A stretch of DNA of 64,000 nucleotides from Macrostomum lignano (Eukaryota), in the NCBI GenBank assembly GCA_002269645.1, contig NIVC01000686.1:62001-126000 (forward strand). The letters are read 5' to 3'. A program made the translations under genes and the position numbers. Shown here piece after piece: positions 1-54,148 of this stretch (positions within the stretch are counted from its first letter, which is position 1; every line of letters begins with the position of its first letter). A model generated the notes under the pieces. That model was not told the origin of the DNA. It did not search any database and saw nothing but the letters and a program-made list of their open reading frames with translations.

Positions 1-1294
1 TTGCCGCAGCCGACCGGAACAGCCATTGCGGAGCAGCGTGACGCCCCCCTCCCTCCCTGTATGAATGATGATTAGTGCAACACAGCTGTTACACAGGCGC
101 TAATCCTGTAATTCGATTCCATATATATATTTATAGTAAGTTGATTAATCACATAGATTATAAACATTGGAACGCCCAAAAGTTGGTGCGAAATCCCTTT
201 TGTTATCATTGGCCACGGATACTAAAATAGCTACGACGTAGATGGGCCACTCAGGCATATATACTTAGCAAAACAGCTTTCTACTGTCAGTTCAGTGGCA
301 AAGAAGAATCCATAAGCTATTTTATAAAAATACAGGCAGCTGAAATGACTTTGATAAGTTTAGAAGCCCAAGCTTTCAGGCGTAAACAACTTGCTAATTG
401 GTTCAGCAATAATGTACATTGGCCAGTCCACTGAAATGTACATGGCAGCTTTAGGCTGGAATTCCGAGAATGACAATAAAAATTGGGGCTGGACGTCGGG
501 GGGGGGGGTAGTCTGGAAAGGCGCGGTTGGAGGGTTTGAGCGGGGGGGTAAGAGCCTATAAATGAGCCTTGGCTTTAAAAATACATACTAAAAATACTAC
601 TAAACTAAAAGTAGCTTACACGCAAATGTGCTGTGTGGCCCATCTAGTTATTCTAGTATCTGTGTTACAGATCAAATCAGGGCTTAATTATTCAAATTAT
701 TTTCAGTTATTTTTTAGTATCGATCTGTCTGCCTGTTGGTACTGTCTGTCTGCCTGTTGGCTAATATATTTTATTTCTTAATACGCGTAATTATACTTTC
801 TCTTTTTATCAAGCAATCAGGAAATAATGCTTTAATTGTTTTGCCGCGTTAAGTTCGCTGATGCCACGAATTGCCCAGCCAGCCGGCCTCCCCCCGTCTG
901 TCTGTCCAGTGTGTTTCAAATGAGTTACCAGGCGAGAACTTCAGGAATTCATACACTTTTTATTGGTTTCGATATTTATCCTAATCTGCTCCCCCCCCCC
1001 CGACTCTGTTTTGCCCAATCCACATGCTGCTATTCTCACGTGTACACTTTGGCAGGAGATTTCATCTGGTTTTTTAACTGCTTTAACTGCGCCTCACTTA
1101 CTTTGTGTTTTTTTATAAATATTTTTGTGTTCTATTTTCTGCAAGTAGCCGTAACTGCTCTGTTGAATCAGGTGTCTCTGCGTGATTTTGTAACCGCTTT
1201 TCTTGTGCTCTGCTATTGCTGCTTTCAGTGCTATCGAGAGCTGCTCCAGCTGCTTGTAATCCTGCAGCTAATCAGCTTCTGTGCTCAGTCTGAG

Positions 1295-3981: not shown

Positions 3982-4508
3982 TCATTGCACTTGGCTGCAT
4001 GCTAGGCGGAGGGAGAATGCCAGATTGCCTACTGCAAGGACTAAGCAACTGGACAGCGGAGATCAGACAAATTTTGTGGCGTCAGTCACCCCTCAGACAG
4101 AAGATGCTGCATAAGAAATCCGAATTCGGAGCTTAACGAATCGCGTCCCCCCCTTCTCTCAGTTCAGCCAATGGTGCAACGGCTTTTGACGAACATTTGG
4201 CCGGCAAAAAACAGTTTTATAGCTGGTGTTTTCCTCGCTTTGCACCATTCCAGCTGATAAAAGCCTCTCTATTGCTGGTAGCTGGTATTTCTCTGCTGCT
4301 TTTTCAACCTTTGCTTGATTGGCCTGCAGCCTCTTCCCTGTGATGTCGCCGCCGCTGATGCAGTTTCCGCTTTTATTGCTGCTCCTGCTGCACTCCGCTA
4401 GAGAAGCCAACGCTCAGCCGGATTTTGGCAGGTGCGTTTATGAATGACCGGAGTTCATCTGTGTTCGGGGTGGGCTCTTAGGATTGTAGTAGGAAACCGG
4501 GGATTTTA

Positions 4509-5504
4509 AGACAAGGAGTCAGGAGATCAGACAAGGAGTCAGGAAGATCAGACAAGGAGTCAGGGGATCAGACAAGGAGTCAGGAAGATCAGACAAGGAG
4601 TCAGGAAGATCAGACAAGGAGTCAGGAAGATCAGACAAGGAGTCAGGAAGATCAGACAAGGAGTCAGGAAGATCAGACAAGGAGTCAGGAAGATCAGACA
4701 AGGAGTCAGGAAGATCAGACAAGGAGTCAGGAAGATCAGACAAGGAGTCAGGAAGATCAGACAAGGAGTCAGGAAGATCAGACAAGGAGTCAGGAAGATC
4801 AGACAAGGAGTCAGGAAGATCAGTCAAGGAGTCAGGGGATCAGACAAAGAGTCAGGGGATCAGACAAGGAGTCAGGAGATCAGACAAGGAGTCAGGAAGA
4901 TCAGACAAGGAGTCAGGGGATCAGACAAGGAGTCAGGAAGATCAGACAAGGAGTCAGGAAGATCAGACAAGGAGTCAGGAAGATCAGACAAGGAGTCAGG
5001 AAGATCAGACAAGGAGTCAGGAAGATCAGTCAAGGAGTCAGGGGATCAGACAAAGAGTCAGGGGATCAGACAAAGAGTCAGGAAGATCAGACAAGGAGTC
5101 AGGAAGATCAGACAAGGAGTCAGGAAGATCAGACAAGGAGTCAGGAAGATCAGACAAGGAGTCAGGAAGATCAGACAAGGAGTCAGGAAGATCAGACAAG
5201 GAGTCAGGAAGATCAGACAAGGAGTCAGGAGATCAGACAAAGAGTCAGGGGATCAGACAAGGAGTCAGGGGATCAGACAAGGAGTCAGGAAGATCAGACA
5301 AGGAGTCAGGGGATCAGACAAAGAGTCAGGGGATCAGACAAGGAGTCAGGGGATTAGACAAGGAGTCAGGAAGATCAGACAAGGAGTCAGGAAGATCAGA
5401 CAAGGAGTCAGGAAGATCAGACAAGGAGTCAGGGGATCAGACAAGGAGTCAGGGGATCAGACAAGGAGTCAGGAAGATCAGACAAGGAGTCAGGAAGATC
5501 AGAC
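4509..5504. repeat. 21-bp minisatellite (AGACAAGGAGTCAGGAAGATC), about 47 copies
   Basis: Direct reading. Confidence 0.95.
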
Positions 5505-5848
5505 ACGAAGAATAAGTAAGGATCAGATTAGGAAGTCAGAGTGTCATAGCCAAATTGCAATAGAATTCCATAAATGAAAATTGACTGGCAGGTATCTTGT
5601 GTTGCTATGCCGCTGGCTGCATCATAAATTAATGGCAGCATCTTATTCTACATTGCCGCTAGGGTGGAACAGCAATTAACCCCAATAATTGCTACCTGAA
5701 CTGACCTTGGTGAACTGACGCGGGCGCTGAGTCACAAGAGACTGCGGCGGCGGGGCCTACTGAACGGGGGGAGCAGTTGACGTCATGGACTTCTGAATGG
5801 AACTTCTGGATCGTGAAAACTAGGAGGCTAGCTTTGATGTGATGATGC

Positions 5849-6895
5849 TACACAGTGATAGGGATTATAATTTTATCAGACAGTGATTGGGATTATAATT
5901 TTATCAGACAGTGATAGGGATTATAATTTTATCAGACAGTGATAGGGATTATAATTTTATCAGACAGTGATTGGGATTATAATTTTATCAGACAGTGATA
6001 GGGATTATAATTTTATCAGACAGTGATAGGGATTATAATTTTATCAGACAGTGATTGGGATTATAATTTTATCAGACAGTGATTGGGATTATAATTTTAT
6101 CAGACAGTGATAGGGATTATAATTTTATCAGACAGTGATTGGGATTATAATGAGATCAGACAGTGATTGGGATTATAATTTTATCAGACAGTGATAGGGA
6201 TTATAATTTTATCAGACAGTGATTGGGATTATAATTTTATCAGACAGTGATTGGGATTATAATTTTATCAGACAGTGATTGGGATTATAATGAGATCAGA
6301 CAGTGATTGGGATTATAATTTTATCAGACAGTGATTGGGATTATAATTTTATCAGACAGTGATTGGGATTATAATGAGATCAGACAGTGATTGGGATTAT
6401 AATTTTATCAGACAGTGATTGGGATTATAATGAGATCAGACAGTGATTGGGATTATAATGGGATCAGACAGTGATTGGGATTATAATTTTATCAGACAGT
6501 GATTGGGATTATAATTTTATCAGACAGTGATTGGGATTATAATTTTATCAGACAGTGATTGGGATTATAATGGGATAAGACAGTGATTGGGATTATAATT
6601 TTATCAGACAGTGATTGGGATTATAATTTTATCAGACAGTGATTGGGATTATAATTTTATCAGACAGTGATTGGGATTATAATGAGATCAGACAGTGATT
6701 GGGATTATAATGAGATCAGACAGTGATTGGGATTATAATTTTATCAGACAGTGATTGGGATTATAATGGGATCAGACAGTGATAGGGATTATAATTTTAT
6801 CAGACAGTGATTGGGATTATAATGGGATCAGACAGTGATTGGAATTTTAATGGGATCAGACAGTGATTGGGATTATAATGGGATCCGGCAGTGAT
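5849..6895. repeat. 28-bp minisatellite (CAGACAGTGATTGGGATTATAATTTTAT), about 37 copies
   Basis: Direct reading. Confidence 0.95.
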
Positions 6896-7578
6896 AGGTA
6901 TAAAAATCTGGCTTATCGGTTTCCAGTCCAGATACTTAACCTCAAACTCCGTGGCGTCCTTGAGTGCGTTAACGGCGGGTGGGCTGGCGCCCTGACGGAC
7001 AGCACCTGTTGGAAATCTGGGATCTTTAGAGGGGGGGGGAGTTCGAGGCTTCATAAAGCGCGAATGACTGTTGGGGATTTTCTGAGAGTTTCGGAATCGG
7101 GTAGTTCAGATTCAGGAGCATCTGATGCCCTGGGCGGCAGACGGGCTGTCAGGGTCGCTCAGCAGGTGCGGCGGCACGGCACACCTGGAAATTTTTTTTC
7201 AATTTGCTTTCTAAAATTCGTTTACCCTAGTTTTGGGAGGCTCTTCGAGGCTATATGATGATATACTGATAGTCTCCTGCATTAAATGTTCAATGCTGCT
7301 TTTAAATTATTTGTGTAAATTTGGAACAGATGGCGTGCGCAATCTTGCTAGCTTTCTGGGTAGATTAGATACCAAAACGGTGATTTGGATAAAAATGGGA
7401 TCTGTAAAATATTGGGATAAAAATGGGATCCAAGAAGGATTGGGATAAAAATATGATCCGAGTGGGATTGGGATAAAAAAGGGATCCGAGAATAGGGATA
7501 AGAATGGAGATTACACAGATATCGGGATGAAAATGGGATTAAACTGTGATTTACCTGTAGTTAGGATGAAAGCAGGAT

Positions 7579-7692
<114 letters not shown>

Positions 7693-7831
7693 CTGGCTGG
7701 GGGGCAGAAAGGAGCAAATTCTAGACCTGCTTGGTACTATAGAAAATCGGCAGAAAAGCTTACCAATTCTACCTGAGAGAGCTAGAGAAAAAGATCGATA
7801 CAAAACAAAATCTGCTTGTCTTCCTGTACCC

Positions 7832-7890
7832 ATGCAGCTGGCACACGGACAAGCTATTTACACACACACTTACACAACCTTATGCTGGAG
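7832..7890 (+). CDS. Candidate upstream exon of the divergent Cys-loop gene (MQ/LAHGQAIYTHTYTTLCW)
   Basis: The donor GAG|GTGCGC at 7891 is phase 2, matching the acceptor at 8932. It could begin at ATG 7832 or at the CAG acceptor 7837. No clear signal peptide. Confidence 0.3.
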
Positions 7891-8496
7891 GTGCGCAAGT
7901 GGCTTCAATTCTCCAAAACACTTATTAGCGGGCGGGGGCCTAATCAACGACTGTCGTTTGACTCGGGCCAAACTTCCCAGGGCCAGCTGAGGGTGGCAGA
8001 GGCACAGACAGACAGGCATGAAGAGAGTCTGGACAACTGGGACAAACGGGAAAAGTGCTGGGAAGGCCAGGAAATGACTGACCGTAGTCTATTACTCTCC
8101 CAGAAACTATAAGGGCCGCAGTGTTGGCCCAGTTTCCGCACCAGCTCGCCTGCATGTAGCAAAACCTGTATTCATAATTGCAGGAAATTGTTGGCTGAAA
8201 AATTTGTGCTTACAAATTCTATGAATTTTAATGTGGAATGAACTGTTTTAGAGATTCAGATGTGCTGTTTTAGACTTGTAATAGTTCTGCTTTTTGTTCG
8301 GCTTTGTGGGAATACAAAACTTGGGATGCGAGTAATCATTTCTTGTATAATAATAATTTTGTTAATAAAGTCGGTTGCTTGCTCAAAGATAATGAGGCTT
8401 CCCTTAAGCCTTATTAAGAATAATAGGGCGTAAGGGAAATGAGAATCAAAGATAATGAGGCTTAAGGATAATGAAGCTTAATGAGAATAAGGTTTC

Positions 8497-8865
8497 AGGG
8501 CTGTGAGGTTTTAGGGCTGAGGTTTTAGGCCTGTGATGCTTCAGGGCCATGAGGCTTCAGGGCTGTGAGGCTTCAGGGCTGTGAGGCTTCAGGGCTGTGA
8601 GGCTTCAGGGCTGTGAGGCTTCAGGGCCATGAGGCTTCAGGGCTGTGAGGCTTCAGGCCCATGAGGCTTCAGGGCTGTGAGGCTTCAGGGCCATGAGGCT
8701 TCAGGGCCATGAGGCTTCAGGCCCATGAGGCTTCAGGGCTGTGAGGCTTCAGGGCTGTGAGGCTTCAGGGCTGTGAGGCTTCAGGGCTGTGAGGCTTCAG
8801 GCCCATGAGGCTTCAGGCCCATGAGGCTTCAGGGCTGTGAGGCTTCAGGGCCATGAGGCTTCAGG
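8497..8865. repeat. 16-bp minisatellite (GAGGCTTCAGGGCTGT)
   Basis: Direct reading. Confidence 0.95.
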
Positions 8866-8931
8866 ATGCAAAGCCTTATGGACAAAGAGGATGCACATGC
8901 TCTGATTAAAACTCTCTCACCTAAATGACAG

Positions 8932-11900
8932 TCCGACCTCGCACCCGGACAGGAAACTGAGCACGGAGTCGGTCAAGGAGCAGATCCGCTCCCTGTACAT
9001 GAACATGGACGTGCCAGAGATTGCACCGTTAGGCGACTCTGTTGACGGCCTGTTGAATGTCTCACTCGAGATCGGACGGGTGCTGCGGTTTGCTAATCAG
9101 GCGAGTTTTTTGCTGTGCAAATTAGAAATCATCTTTGACATGATCTGCACATTCTAAGCATTCTTGACATGATCTGCACATTGTAAACATTCTTGACATG
9201 ATCTGAACATTCTAAGCATTCTTGAAATGATCTGCACATTGTAAACATTTTTGACATGATATTCACATTCTAAACATTCTTGGCATGATCTGCACATTCT
9301 AAACATTCTTGACATGTTCTGCACATTCTAAACATTCTTGACATGATCTGCACATTCTAAACATTCTTGACATACTTTGCAAAACATTCTAAGCATTTTC
9401 ACGTTATTTGCATGTTGAACGGTCTCGCAGACTTTGCTGAAATTCCGATCATAACTCGCATTGATTCTCTACCCCCCCCCTGCCACTTTGCCAGATCCTG
9501 GACATGTCCATCACCCTGGAGCTGCGCTGGCGGCATCGCTTCCTGAAGATGCTCCAGGAGGACCTGCAGTCGGTGCCGCTGAACCGTCAGAATCTGTGGA
9601 CGCCGCGGATGGCCTTCGTGAATGCGTTGTCCATGGAAGAGGATCAGAACTCGCTCTACCTTCATCTGGCTCCCGGCGACAGGGCAGTGATCTACAGGCT
9701 TTGGTGAGTGTGTCTGGGGCAGTGATCTACAGGCTTTGGTGAGTGTGTCTGGGGCAGTGATCTACAGGCTTTGGTGAGGTCCAGCGCGGCGCTCTGATGC
9801 GCCAGCGGCCCAGGCTCGATTCCAAGTGCAGTCACATTAATTTGGAACTAAATTGGAATCTCGGCTTGGCTCTGTTCGTCGAGGGTCATTCCCCAAGGCA
9901 CAGTGACGTGTTCATGCCTAACGATAAATAAAGTTAGGGCCGCTGTACACTCCTGTGTGAGTGTGTGCCTGTGCGTGTGACTGCGTACGTATCCGCGCTC
10001 TTGTGTGCCTGCTCAGGGGAGTCGGCGGAATGGGCAGCAATGCCTCTCGCCGGTTGTGTGACAATGTCGCTTAAAGTGCGCCAGTGTGCACACAACCCCC
10101 CGCCTCTACGAGCGTAATTAAAAAAAGAAATGTGCAATTTTGCTACCTATCTAGGCTGTACACTTAAGACGCCGTACATTTATAATGCACTTATATGCTG
10201 TTTATCAGCATTTATCAAGCTGTACATTTACCAGGCTGTATGTACATTTATTCTGAGGACTTAACAGTCTGTACATTGTGCGTATCCTCATCTCATAGCC
10301 GTACTCACCACAAACTGCAGGTACCGAGCGAGTGTAAGGTGCGACAGTTCCAGCATTCGGCATCCTCTAGGAGACCAACTGTGCGCGCTTGTCTTTGAAG
10401 AGAGTAAGCCGATTTGAAGCAACTTCAGGTTCCGGGTTGCTAACTTTCCAGACCTTTGGTCTTTGTTTATCTTAACTCTCTGTCTTCAACCGCAGCTCAT
10501 CCGCAGAGTCGCCGATCGATTCGGGTGAGTCCGAGCGACCGGCACCGGCTGAAGTGCAGCGAAGTGCGAGGCGGCCAGCACCCTCTGGTATATCGGGTGA
10601 CCGAGGCGGCCGGTTCTGCTGAGCAGGGTGAGCTCGACTGAAGCACGAACTGTTTGCTCCTTAGGATTCTGTTTGTGAGGCTTCCGTACAGGCAGTGAGG
10701 CTTCAGTACAGTTAGTGAGGCTTCCGTACAGGCAGTGAGGCTTCAGTACAGTTAGTGAGGCTTCAGTACAGTTAGTGAGGCTTCCGTACAGGCAGTGAGG
10801 CTTCAGTACAGTTAGTGAGGCTTCCGTACAGGCAGTGAGGCTTCAGTACAGTTAGTGAGGCCTGAGTACAGTTAGTGAGGCCTGAGTACAGTTAGTGAGG
10901 CTTCCGTACAGGCAGTGAGGCTTCAGTACAGTTAGTGAGGCCTGAGTACAGTTAGTGAGGCTTCAGTACAGTTAGTGAGGCCTGAGTACAGTTAGTGAGG
11001 CTTCAGTACAGTTAGTGAGGCTTCGGGACAGTCAGTGAGGCTTCAGGACAGTGAGTGAGGCTTCAGGACAGTCAGTGAAGCTTCAGTACAGTCAGTGAGG
11101 CTTCAGTACAGTTAGTGAGGCTTCGGGACAGTCAATGAGGCTTCAGGACAGTGAGTGAGGCTTCAGGACAGTCAGTGAGGCTTCAGGACAGTGAGTGAGG
11201 CTTCGGGACAGTCAGTGAGGCTTCAGGACAGTGAGTGAGGCTTCAGGACAGTCAGTGAAGCTTCAGTACAGTCAGTGAGGCTTCAGGACAGTCAGTGAGG
11301 CTTCGGGACAGTCAGTGAGGCTTCAGGACAGTGAGTGAGGCTTCAGGACAGTCAGTGAGGCTAGTTGGTGAGGCTTCAGGGTAATCAGTGAGGCTTCAGG
11401 GTAATCAGTGAGGCTTCAGGGTAATCAGTGAGGCTTCATTTAAAAAATCTCACTTCCACAGCTCGCGGGCTGAGACTGCAGGCGCAGGTGTGCATCCGGT
11501 CGGACCTGCTGAGCACGGCGGCCTCGCCTGAGCTTCGCCGTTGCATTCTGGCGGGTCTCCTCACCCTGTTGTGTCTGTCCAGTCTGTTTCTGCTCAGTGA
11601 ATGCCCAGCCGCTCGGGTATGCGTGAATCTGCTGGCGCTTCACTGCATCGTGCAGGTGAGACTTTTGCCTTCTGCTCTGAGTTTCTATTTTTTGTTTGAG
11701 ATTCACTGAACTTAAATTTTCTTTGAAATTTCCTTTTGAAATTATTAGATGATGCCGCTGATTCTCGCTAATTTGTATATAATCCCGTTAAAGAGAATCT
11801 TACAGAGTCTCATAGAATCTCAAAGAGTCTCATAGAATCTCACAGAATCCCATAGAATCTCACAGAATCTCATAGAATCTCACAGAATCTCATAGAATCT

Positions 11901-13307
11901 CACATAATCTCATAGAATCTCACAGAATCTCATAGAATCTCACAGAATCTCATAGAATCTCACAGAATCTCATAGAATCTCACAGAATCTCATAGAATCT
12001 CACAGAATCTCATAGAATCTCACAGAATCTCATAGAATCTCACAGAATCTCACAGATTCTCACAGATTCTCACAGAATCTCACAGATTCTCACAAAATCT
12101 AATTGAAACTCACAGAATGTCACAAAATGTCACAGCTTCTCACAGGATCTCACAGAATCTCATTAAACACGATAAACTCTCAAAGAATCTCCAGAGGCAG
12201 TCTCACAGTAGAGTACCAAGAGAATTCTACTCAAACTTCACCCCGCCCAGGCGTGGCAGCTCCCGCAGCCACTGTCCATTCTGGATGCCTGGCACGCCGT
12301 TGCCTGCATCGTCGCCGTCTGCTGCCTTCTGAGCGCCGCTGCCGACTCCGTCGCCTCGCCCGGCTCCGCCTCCACCGACAGTTGCTGCTGCTGTTGCTGC
12401 TTCTGCAGCCGCAGCGATGCTCGCGACGACGGTGGCAAGGAGGAAGACCGCGATGACGATGGTGAGCGACACGTCGACGGCTCCGACGCGAACAAAAATG
12501 GCGCCGGCGCCGGCAAGGTGAGAGTTCGGTTTGCTGTGCGGCCTTGCCTGCGTTTTTCCAAGTATAATATCAATAGTAGCAAAGTTAGGACGCTACTGTC
12601 TAGCTACTCACAGTAGCTGATTGGCGCAGACATTCATACCGTATTATGATCTCAACCCTATCCTTGCCTATGTTTTTATTCTCATCCTTTTTTATCCCCG
12701 TAATTTTAATCCTCATACTATGATACCCGTAGTCCTTTGAGATCACATCCTTTGATTACCTCTACCTTTAATTGCCCCATCCTTTGAGCTCGCCCATGCT
12801 TAATCCCCTCCCTGATCCCCTCCCTGATCTCATCCCCGATCCCATCCCTGATCCCCTCCCTGATCCCGTCCCTGATCCCGTCCCTGATCCCATCCCTGAT
12901 CCCGTCCCTGATCCCGTCCCTGATCCTATCCCTGAAACCATCCCCGATCTCCACCCCATCGGCAGCCGGCCTACCGCTCGCCCATCACGGCCTACTCGAA
13001 GGCGCCGCGGTCGACATCCGCCGCGGCGGCCGCCCTCGTGCTGTCAGACTCGTCGGATCATCTCGATCTGTTCAGCACGGCGGGTATCGATGCGTCGGTC
13101 GGCCGAGCTGCCGGACATGGTCGAGGCAGCGGCCGGCATCATCGTCGACGTCGTCAAGTTCGCTGCTGCCGGCTGTGCCGCCGCCTGCTGAGAGCCGCCC
13201 TGCCGCTGGCCTGGGTGGCCTTCAGCGCCGCCTACTGGGCTGTCCTGGCTGTCACTGCGCCTCTGTGCGAGACCCTGCTGCCTGAGTGCTTCCCTGCTGC
13301 TGCCTGA
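8932..13307 (+). CDS. Divergent Cys-loop (pentameric) ligand-gated ion channel-like subunit; exons 8932-9100, 9495-9703, 10321-10403, 10496-10627, 11462-11655, 12251-12517, 12966-13307 (about 464 aa, N-terminal exon(s) not resolved)
   Basis: Seven exons join in frame (intron phases 0,2,1,1,0,0; first donor GC, the rest GT-AG). The translation shows pLGIC landmarks in order: NQILDMSITLELRW (beta2), NLWTPRMAFVNA (loop A), C-x13-C loop CDSSSIRHPLGDQLC, M1 CILAGLLTLLCLSSLFLL, PAAR-M2, M3 LSILDAWHAVACIVAVCCLL, M4 RAALPLAWVAFSAAYW, and a stop at 13305-13307. Confidence 0.85.
9135..9398. repeat. 29-bp intronic minisatellite (TTGACATGATCTGCACATTCTAAACATTC)
   Basis: Direct reading; about 9 copies. 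Confidence 0.9.
9682..9778 (+). repeat. 35-bp triplication spanning an exon/donor junction
   Basis: GGGCAGTGATCTACAGGCTTTGGTGAG(TGTGTCTG) starts at 9682, 9717 and 9752. Confidence 0.95.
9779..10108 (+). mobile_element. SINE-like dispersed repeat, copy 1 (in intron of the Cys-loop gene)
   Basis: About 300 bp are shared with 59304-59605. It has a B-box-like GGCTCGATTCC preceded by a GGCGC/GCGCC anticodon-like stem. Confidence 0.65.
10675..11438. repeat. 20-bp intronic minisatellite (GTGAGGCTTCAGTACAGTTA) with left-to-right variant gradient
   Basis: Direct reading. Confidence 0.95.
11795..12170. repeat. 10-bp intronic repeat (AGAATCTCAY)
   Basis: Direct reading. Confidence 0.95.
12800..12950. 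repeat. 12-bp intronic repeat (CCTGATCCCGTC) abutting a splice acceptor
   Basis: Direct reading. Confidence 0.9.
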
Positions 13308-14225
13308 GTGCTTCCCTACTGCCTGAGTGCTCCCTGCTGCCTGGGTGCTTCCCTACTGCCTGAGTGCTCCCTGCTGCCTGAGTGCTCCCTGCTGCCTGAG
13401 TGCTCCCTGCTGCATGAATGCTTTCCTGCTGACTGAGTGCTCCCTGCTGCCTGAGTGCTCCCTGCTGCATGAATGCTTTCCTGCTGCATGAATGCTTTCC
13501 TGCTGACTGAGTGCTCCCTGCTGCCTGAGTGCTCCCTGCTGCATGAATGCTTTCCTGCTGCATGAATGCTTTCCTGCTGACTGAGTGCTCCCTGCTGCCT
13601 GAGTGCTCCCTGCTGCATGAATGCTTTCCTGCTGCATGAATGCTTTCCTGCTGACTGAGTGCTCCCTGCTGCCTGAGTGCTCCCTGCTGCATGAATGCTT
13701 TCCTGCTGCATGAATGCTTTCCTGCTGACTGAGTGCTCCCTGCTGCCTGAGTGCTCCCTGCTGCCTGAGTGCTCCCTGCTGCATGAATGCTTTCCTGCTG
13801 CATGAATGCTTTCCTGCTGCATGAATGCTTTCCTGCTGCCTGAGTGCTCCCTGCTGCCTGAGTGCTCCCTGCTGCCTGAGTGCTCCCTGCTGCCTGAGTG
13901 CTCCCTGCTGCCTGAGTGCTCCCTGCTGCCTGAGTGCTCCCTGCTGCCTGAGTGCTCCCTGCTGCATGAATGCTTTCCTGCTGCATGAATGCTTTCCTGC
14001 TGACTGAGTGCTCCCTGCTGCCTGAGTGCTCCCTGCTGCCTGAGTGCTCCCTGCTGACTGAGTGCTCCCTGCTGCCTGAGTGCTCCCTGCTGACTGAGTG
14101 CTCCCTGCTGCCTGAGTGCTCCCTGCTGCCTGAGTGCTCCCTGCTGCCTGAGTGCTCCCTGCTGCATGAATGCTTTCCTGCTGACTGAGTGCTCCCTGCT
14201 GCCTGAGTGCTTTCCCGCTGACTGA
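13275..14225. repeat. 18/19-bp two-monomer minisatellite (CTGCTGCCTGAGTGCTCC / CTGCTGCATGAATGCTTTC) overlapping the Cys-loop gene stop codon
   Basis: Direct reading. Confidence 0.95.

Positions 14226-36160: not shown

Positions 36161-42100
<5,940 letters not shown>

Positions 42101-45630: not shown

Positions 45631-54148
<8,518 letters not shown>

Follow-up and report, generated by a model that had tools for sequence, protein, structure and literature searches.

What kind of protein is encoded by a set of short exons in the flatworm Macrostomum lignano that read like a pentameric ligand-gated ion channel (pLGIC) subunit and at the same time lack much of what usually identifies one? The exons lie in a stretch of 64,000 nt (assembly GCA_002269645.1, contig NIVC01000686.1, positions 62,001-126,000 of the forward strand), which was analyzed at its full length and is referred to as the window. 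An initial annotation of this DNA had proposed a hidden, extremely divergent Cys-loop receptor at positions 8932-13307, composed of seven exons and carrying a histidine at position 9' of the second transmembrane helix, M2. As far as can be judged from sequence comparison, our analysis confirmed that the window holds an intact-looking, highly divergent pLGIC gene of the GABA/glycine receptor type.

Gene model and splice sites

Positions 8500-13800 were read and translated in the three forward frames, and the proposed exons were then assembled. The seven exons within 8932-13307 join with matching phases at every junction and with zero in-frame stops, confirming the coordinates, phases and open frame initially given for them. 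The gene is not complete within this span, as an additional exon encoding the start methionine and a signal peptide lies outside, at 4343-4431. Splicing this exon directly from 4431 to 8932 keeps the frame, and residues 641-675 of the M. lignano UniProt entry A0A1I8HIK5 map to window positions 4328-4432 with 94% identity (tblastn). The full model consists of eight coding exons (Table 1) with 1,485 coding bases free of stops and frameshifts, and translates into 494 amino acids. The predicted protein comprises a signal peptide, a beta-rich domain, four hydrophobic segments, a long loop between M3 and M4, and a short cysteine-containing tail. In addition to the elements listed in Table 1, exon 7 encodes the Cys/Asp-rich beginning of the intracellular loop, and exon 8 is 47% identical to M4 and the C-terminal tail of the paralogue described below (tblastn).

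Six of the seven introns in the full model, and five of the six between the original seven exons, follow the GT-AG rule. The exception is the intron following 9100, with a GC donor (CAG/gcgagt); every acceptor and the other six donors are canonical. The resulting length of the exon 2-exon 3 junction is equalled in the M. lignano paralogues A0A1I8JEP1 and A0A1I8FW04. An alternative donor at 9079/9080 for this intron was rejected, since it would drop seven residues kept by the paralogues. Likewise discarded was an acceptor at ~12221, which would add RILLKLHPAQ and give a normal M2-M3 length; this site has a poor polypyrimidine tract, and it is the short form with which the paralogue aligns colinearly.

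In the frame of the model, the GC content of the coding sequence is 0.74 at third codon positions (GC3) and 0.51 at second codon positions (GC2). The exons of a tubulin gene and of a nicotinic acetylcholine receptor (nAChR)-like gene in the same window have a GC3 of 0.69-0.81, and the introns of the receptor gene a GC content of 0.36-0.51. The codon-position signal resembles that of the window's known genes, and the chosen frame is therefore supported. A second copy of the receptor gene was not found within the 64-kb window.

Table 1. Exons and associated features of the predicted receptor gene (positions in the window)
Feature	Position	Strand	Remarks
Coding exon 1: start Met, signal peptide MSPPLMQFPLLLLLLLHSAREANAQPDFG and 2 further bases (phase 2)	4343..4431	+	ATG at 4343; donor gtgcgt; tblastn
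47-nt segment used as an exon by A0A1I8HIK5 (RYLTSNSVASLSALTA)	6932..6978	+	tblastn, residues 674-690 on 6927-6977
Coding exon 2: N-terminal helix and beta1, KLSTESVKEQIRSLYMNMDVPEIAP...LNVSLEIGRVLRFANQ, with conserved NVS sequon	8932..9100	+	GC donor at its end
Coding exon 3: beta2-beta6, with LRWRHRF and LWTPRMAFVN	9495..9703	+	209 nt, phase 0 to 2; core of the PF02931 match
Coding exon 4: Cys-loop YRASVRCDSSSIRHPLGDQLCALVFEE	10321..10403	+	83 nt; C-x13-C kept
Coding exon 5: region usually holding loops B and F	10496..10627	+	132 nt; one aromatic residue; no Pfam match
Coding exon 6: pre-M1, M1, M1-M2 loop (SECPAAR), M2 up to VCVNLLALHCIVQ	11462..11655	+	hydropathy; profile alignment
CAC codon of the mid-M2 histidine	11641..11643	+	9' when the conserved Arg is taken as 0'
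Coding exon 7: end of M2 (AWQ), linker LPQPLS, M3 ILDAWHAVACIVAVCCLL	12251..12517	+	junction IVQ/AWQ colinear with paralogue LLLNWQ
Coding exon 8: intracellular loop with SDHLDLF, M4 RAALPLAWVAFSAAYWAVL, C-terminal CETLLPEC	12966..13307	+	TGA at 13305-13307
Intronic minisatellite arrays	4509-5505, 5852-6879, 8490-8865, 9135-9373, 10675-11438, 11794-12162, 12803-12949		

Similarity to the anionic receptor branch

The predicted protein matched the Pfam profile Neur_chan_LBD (PF02931) with E = 1.4e-7 and 31.6 bits (33.9 bits for the ligand-binding domain, LBD, alone), above the curated cut-off of 26. The match covers profile positions 40-146 of 216, a stretch that begins at beta1/2 and closes with the Cys-loop (exons 2-4). 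The initial annotation had named the lack of any pLGIC profile match as an argument against its very divergent Cys-loop receptor, an objection that falls with this score. Of the two profiles it had listed, the second one, Neur_chan_memb (PF02932), remained unmatched at E ≤ 10 with the whole protein, with the transmembrane domain (TMD) alone and with the paralogue. The lone Pfam row for the TMD alone, Dumpy_DPY (E = 0.36), was dismissed as insignificant. As a control, the nAChR-like gene in the same window reached 151 bits with the LBD profile and 44 + 53 bits with that of the TMD; the weak Pfam signal therefore belongs to the receptor gene and not to the genome.

A family profile built from three sequences was searched against the PDB, and the top 60 matches were considered in a ranking that is one of similarity, not a phylogeny. 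The human GABA-A delta subunit (PDB 7qn5_E) was matched with E = 2.2e-8 in a single alignment from beta1 to M3. Glycine receptor (GlyR) alpha2 (E = 1.3e-4), the TMD of GlyR alpha3 (1.4e-3), GABA-A rho1 (6.7e-3), GABA-A beta2 (0.015) and the glutamate-gated chloride channel GluCl (0.04) were matched at higher E-values. AChBP/alpha7 chimeras represented the best cation-type match (0.14), and neither full-length cationic receptors nor prokaryotic channels were present among these 60.

Hydropathy analysis delineated four hydrophobic segments (residues 252-278, 275-296, 299-329 and 458-482), which follow the order M1-M2-M3, long loop, M4 as in solved receptors. In the profile alignments, M1-M2 was aligned to GABA-A delta and GlyR, and M3 to the GlyR stretch AIDIWMAVC; M4 (RAALPLAWVAFSAAYW) aligns with GlyR RAAFPLAFLIFNIFYW. 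A further likeness concerns the exon structure. Exon 6 of the GABA-A receptor gene Gabra2 presumably encodes the Cys-loop. Exons 5 and 6 of mouse Gabra2 measure 221 and 83 bp (PMC4816644), and the consecutive 209- and 83-nt exons of the window gene have the same phases (0 to 2 to 1); the 12 nt by which the sizes differ correspond to a net gap of four residues when HMMER aligns the sequences with delta. By profile ranking against the PDB, M4 alignment and these exon phases, the closest similarity of the gene is to the anionic GABA-A/GlyR/GluCl branch and not to cationic subunits, which upholds the affinity postulated at the outset.

A paralogous family in M. lignano

A word-index search for homologues of the spliced protein returned no match, not even the UniProt entry of the same locus, probably as a result of low-complexity words swamping the candidates. 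The profile version of this search retrieved A0A1I8HIK5 and A0A1I8JEP1 only. Using HMMER, the peptide of a single exon (9495-9701) was compared with 1.84 billion representatives without a word index, giving four proteins at E < 0.001, three of them M. lignano UniProt entries. The fourth (E = 2e-4), a repeat protein without relation to the receptor, was set aside. A0A1I8JEP1 (147 aa) is 57% and A0A1I8IB64 (372 aa) 52% identical to this exon 3 query, the latter belonging to a cluster that includes one further member and A0A1I8FW04 (538 aa, full length), hereafter called the paralogue.

A0A1I8FW04, A0A1I8IB64, A0A1I8FBP5 and A0A1I8JEP1 represent separate loci, each automatically named "Neur_chan_LBD domain-containing protein". 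These four paralogues are 39-60% identical and have motifs, lengths, a weak Pfam signal confined to the LBD, and the mid-M2 histidine in common. There are at least two paralogue groups besides the window gene, i.e., at least three groups in M. lignano. A literature search found no published description of this receptor family.

Over its full length, the window protein shows 38-39% identity to the paralogue, with values of 50, 62, 54, 57, 31, 28, 25 and 34% for exons 1 to 8, respectively. Colinearity of the two extends to five of the seven splice junctions, among them the one with the GC donor and the junction IVQ/AWQ within M2. The alignment has a 17-residue gap near 4431/8932, and 12517/12966 falls in the gapped, poorly conserved intracellular loop.

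The motif STESxKExIxxLYMNMDVPE in the N-terminal helix (window 8960-9020) is invariant across the three paralogue groups. This helix region is normally poorly conserved among pLGICs, and the motif may represent a family-specific interaction surface. An NVS sequon is likewise conserved in all three groups, which fits a luminal or extracellular domain. Further conserved elements are LRWxHxF, PLNRxxLWTP, both cysteines of the Cys-loop and LDxW in M3. Within M2, the conserved residues are R, N(+4), L(+5), L(+8), H(+9), W(+15) and Q(+16), and in the C-terminal half they comprise SDHLDLF, AA(Y/F)WA in M4 and C-x-x-LLPEC. The Cys-loop of the paralogue is CDGPALQYPLSDTLC, i.e., C-DGPALQYPLSDTL-C, its M1-M2 loop is two residues shorter, and STR replaces PAAR. 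PAR before M2 is therefore not a feature of the family, and the weight initially placed on it was overstated. The shared layout is kept over ~60% residue divergence, and conservation of this kind between such distant sequences speaks for a functional family and against decaying copies.

Divergence at canonical positions

The sequence of the 83-nt Cys-loop exon proved to be as first described. Its cysteines are separated by 13 residues (C-DSSSIRHPLGDQL-C), the spacing of the superfamily. The F/YPxD motif is replaced by HPLGD in the window gene and by YPLSD in the paralogue, the aspartate being shifted by one position. In loop A, the aspartate of WxPD is substituted by arginine (LWTPR), and by glutamine (WTPQ) in A0A1I8JEP1. 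The 67 residues from the Cys-loop to M1, in which loops B, F and C are expected, contain one aromatic residue, in agreement with the earlier view that the aromatic box is mostly gone. M1 lacks the conserved proline. The stretch between Arg 0' and the LDxW aspartate measures 25 residues in the window gene, 27 in the paralogue and 32 in GlyR alpha2. The M2-M3 linker had been estimated to be ~5 residues shorter than in GlyR; this value holds for the paralogue, whereas the window gene is seven residues shorter.

Register of the M2 histidine

M2 was confirmed to read PAAR-VCVNLLALHCIVQ, with the histidine codon at the position initially given (Table 1). Ahead of the helix, the window gene has P-A-A-R with proline at -3' and the paralogue S-T-R, and an acidic residue at -1' is present in neither. 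Counting from the arginine as 0', in line with the usual practice of giving this number to the conserved basic residue, position 6' is leucine (alanine in the paralogue) and 9' is histidine in both, instead of the usual Thr/Ser at 6' and Leu at 9'. The M2 of A0A1I8FW04/A0A1I8IB64 (RLLINLALLH) retains the histidine.

The alignments to known receptors differ in the label that they assign to this residue. HMMER opened gaps within M2 against GABA-A delta and placed the histidine opposite 13'. The alignment to GlyR is ungapped from M1 to Gln 14' and puts the arginine at -2', the histidine at 7' and Leu/Ile at 9'. An ungapped BLOSUM62 scan of M1-M2 gave positive scores for the window gene only with the arginine at 0' (+16 for GlyR alpha2, +8 for delta), and the best scores for the paralogue with the arginine at -2' (+29 and +27). 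The 9' assignment of the initial annotation stands insofar as the histidine lies nine residues past the conserved arginine in both paralogue groups, and is contradicted by the alignments giving 7' or 13'. We consider 9', with the conserved basic residue at 0', a reasonably probable assignment, because length differences in the loops combined with a basic 0' are the more parsimonious solution. Whatever its label, the histidine is placed mid-membrane by its position nine residues above the interfacial arginine in a predicted helix of ~17 residues.

An automatic model of the same locus

The first half of the gene is contained in A0A1I8HIK5, a "ZP domain-containing protein" of 883 aa that stems from the same locus and is 97% identical to the exon 3 query. 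Its residues 699-883 correspond to window positions 8932-10627, ending with ..GGQHPLVY before M1 (tblastn). The window exons 2, 4 and 5 are identical or almost identical in this entry, and exon 3 is mostly so. A0A1I8HIK5 is a chimeric, truncated automatic model, which is joined to an upstream ZP gene, uses a wrong 9100/9495 splice and ends before M1. Where the predictor avoided the GC donor, it carries the frame-patched stretch ANPGHVHHPGAALAQ. The upstream neighbor is a ZP-domain gene, the last matched piece of which (AAADRNSHCGAA) lies at window positions 3-38 (+). The name of the entry therefore conceals its receptor part. In effect, annotation never reached the channel half of the gene, and the first half is represented in UniProt only within the chimera. 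The gene had initially been called hidden, which is true of the unannotated channel half; the first half is present in the chimeric model, and the paralogues bear an automatic Neur_chan_LBD label.

The chimeric model also includes a 47-nt segment as an exon between exons 1 and 2 (Table 1). With this segment included, the frame of the window hits a TGA at 8958-8960. The A-run at 8954-8956 reads GGAAACTG in the window, and A0A1I8HIK5 implies one A more (GGAAAACTG); the length of this run therefore determines whether the path through the 47-nt exon is open or closed. The difference would reflect an indel introduced in one of the assemblies, or else a true polymorphism. In the paralogues, STES follows immediately upon the signal peptide (..SSREA), without the 47-nt segment, and skipping of the segment is favored because of this direct join. 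Probably the segment is not a genuine exon, or else a single base pair is missing from the window copy, and the explanation we favor is that the predictor introduced the 47-nt exon to repair an assembly indel.

Interpretation of the receptor gene

We lean towards regarding the gene as a highly derived pLGIC subunit of anionic GABA-A/GlyR/GluCl descent, which belongs to a small paralogous M. lignano family and would have a pore that may be histidine-dependent. The protein would still form membrane pentamers. Classical transmitter gating would be lost, because the protein has lost the aromatic box, the aspartates of WxPD and FPxD, the proline of M1 and the greater part of the M2-M3 coupling loop, and the coupling interface between LBD and TMD would be crippled. 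Given an arginine at 0', the lack of an acidic residue at -1' and the polar residues His and Gln on the side that faces the pore in canonical receptors, the pore would be expected to be anion-permeable or weakly selective. A ring of mid-membrane histidines could render conduction dependent on protonation or on occupancy by Zn2+ or other metals, or leave the pore partly open at rest; we propose this because polar substitutions at 9' act in such a way in nAChR and GABA-A receptors, where their effect is established. A more far-reaching version, in which the histidine rings replace the hydrophobic gate and the pore, almost devoid of an M2-M3 loop, is gated or blocked directly by protons or Zn2+, appears rather improbable to us. 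If true, proton or Zn2+ gating of the pore without an extracellular agonist site would constitute a new gating logic in the superfamily.

Several observations weigh against a derived channel subunit. The missing PF02932 signal has its counterpart in the PDB, in which the transmembrane half alone found no pLGIC match (phmmer). M2 comprises ~17 residues and is directly followed by LPQP, which is short for a pore helix, and its register is ambiguous between the alignments. The AlphaFold2 model of A0A1I8FW04, calculated from a shallow alignment that was made without window exons 5-8, was unusable (pLDDT 34, pTM 0.24). An exact look-up of four full-length variants of the product in a collection of 15 billion proteins found none of them present, and the splice model is a prediction from DNA and protein comparison. 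Moreover, the sole database model of the locus contains the 47-nt exon, which gives a premature stop in the window.

Much of the same evidence could be accommodated by the main rival reading, a pLGIC derivative that does not conduct, i.e., an accessory or silent subunit assembling with conventional GABA-A-like subunits, or a non-channel membrane receptor that binds via the conserved N-terminal helix and the beta1-beta6 face. The N-terminal motif and beta1-beta6 are the most conserved parts (54-62%), compared with 25-31% for M1-M3. Elements of gating are lost (WTPR, HPLGD, no M1 proline, an M2-M3 stretch shortened by 5-7 residues), and the absent PF02932 signal points in the same direction. However, the polar M2 residues N4', H9', W15' and Q16' are conserved together with the 0' arginine, which is unexpected for a mere anchor, and four transmembrane segments as well as the M4 motif are all kept. 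We hold a non-conducting derivative to be unlikely, though far from negligible. Decay of the window copy, as a pseudogene, non-functional allele or homeologue of an otherwise working family, is improbable in our view. It would account for the single missing base pair and the TGA at 8958-8960 under the exon structure of A0A1I8HIK5, for the lack of an annotated or transcript-derived full-length protein in the databases searched, for final codons inside an expanding minisatellite, and for the one non-canonical GC donor. Yet the 494-aa reading frame is complete without the 47-nt segment, which the paralogues lack, and neither a stop nor a frameshift interrupts its 1,485 coding bases. Canonical splice sites are present at every acceptor and at six of the seven donors, and GC3 reaches the level of expressed genes. 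Exons 2-5 are identical or nearly identical to A0A1I8HIK5, whose frame-patching ANPGHVHHPGAALAQ points to errors in the older assembly and not in the present one.

An ordinary chloride channel gated by GABA, glycine or glutamate, odd merely through fast flatworm evolution, would agree with the best PDB matches (GABA-A delta, GlyR and GluCl) and with the GABA-A receptors reported from M. lignano (PMC6881066). Against it, the nAChR-like gene in the same genome scores 151 and 44 + 53 bits, as opposed to 31.6 bits and no match for the receptor gene; a gene that scores well in the same genome means that lineage rate alone is no explanation. With a single aromatic residue in loops B, F and C, and with the aspartates of loop A and the Cys-loop lost, we regard an ordinary channel as highly improbable.

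Tandem repeats and neighboring genes

Minisatellites with periods of 12-29 bp largely fill those introns of the receptor gene that exceed ~390 nt, except for 9704-10320, and this intronic repeat load probably explains the broken automatic gene models. The arrays at 8490-8865 and 10675-11438, located in different introns, have the core GTGAGGCTTCAG in common. A further 18-bp minisatellite (CCCTGCTGCCTGAGTGCT, ~51 copies) extends from 13273 to 14211, and its first units are made up of the LLPEC codons and the gene's final 11 codons, and contain the stop codon. This array seems to have grown from the 3' end of the coding sequence, with the last residues (FPAAA and the stop) being repeat-derived. 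At 9683-9779, the end of exon 3 together with the GT donor that follows it (GGCAGTGATCTACAGGCTTTG/GTGAGTGTGTCTGG) recurs ~2.8 times with a period of 35 nt. The reading frame is kept by the first donor alone; the later copies would add 35 nt and a stop.

Further genes were recognized in the window. An alpha-tubulin gene at ~37720-42100 (+) has introns full of tandem repeats, and the open reading frame of its last exon (41447-42100) matches Tubulin_C with 145 bits. The nAChR-like gene, a conventional pLGIC gene, is located at 45631-54148 (-), with three coding exons at 53459-54148, ~46319-46834 and 45631-46269, and shares ~70% identity with a UniProt protein from M. lignano, the species that also supplied its best match. 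Two pLGIC genes that differ strongly from each other are thus situated ~32 kb apart on opposite strands.

Relation to known receptors

We classify the receptor family as a lineage-specific pLGIC variant for which no earlier study was found. If its members conduct, they would represent a flatworm-specific channel type without a vertebrate counterpart, and a natural test case for the two gating elements that are most conserved in Cys-loop receptors, the 9' leucine gate and the coupling interface between the M2-M3 loop and the Cys-loop. If they are silent or accessory, the family would enlarge the long list of orphan pLGICs from invertebrates only modestly.

Sensitivity to pH or metals is known from several pLGICs, e.g., GLIC (with a histidine at M2 11'), the insect pHCl channels, C. 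elegans PBO-5/6 and vertebrate ZAC. In GLIC, the mid-M2 histidine is functionally important and faces M3, not the pore. None of these proton- or metal-sensitive receptors appeared among the top 60 PDB matches, and no kinship by sequence was seen beyond superfamily level.

The GABA-A and glycine receptors have more in common with the window gene, namely a signal peptide, an N-terminal helix, the C-x13-C spacing and an 83-nt exon following one of ~210-220 nt, as well as an arginine at M2 0' after small residues, LDxW in M3 and (A/F)PLA...YW in M4. Unlike these receptors, the window gene has no PF02932 match, no aromatic residues of loops B and C, and no M1 proline. Position 6' is Leu/Ala instead of Thr, a histidine stands where the 9' leucine is expected, and the protein ends in the C-x-x-LLPEC tail.

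Among flatworms, a survey covering ligand-gated ion channels (LGICs) that included M. lignano relied on PF02932-derived hidden Markov models, required three to five transmembrane segments and inspected F/YPxD (PMC6881066). Surveys based on PF02932 and F/YPxD, this one included, would probably miss the receptor family, which fails both filters. The schistosome "Cys-less" LGIC clade has no Cys-loop cysteines, keeps F/YPxD and carries a glutamate at -2' (Johnson et al. 2023, PMC9874803). Like the M. lignano family, it is a flatworm-specific, divergent pLGIC group without an assignable ligand (PMC9874803). The M. lignano family, in contrast, keeps the cysteines, has lost FPxD and carries no acidic residue ahead of M2.

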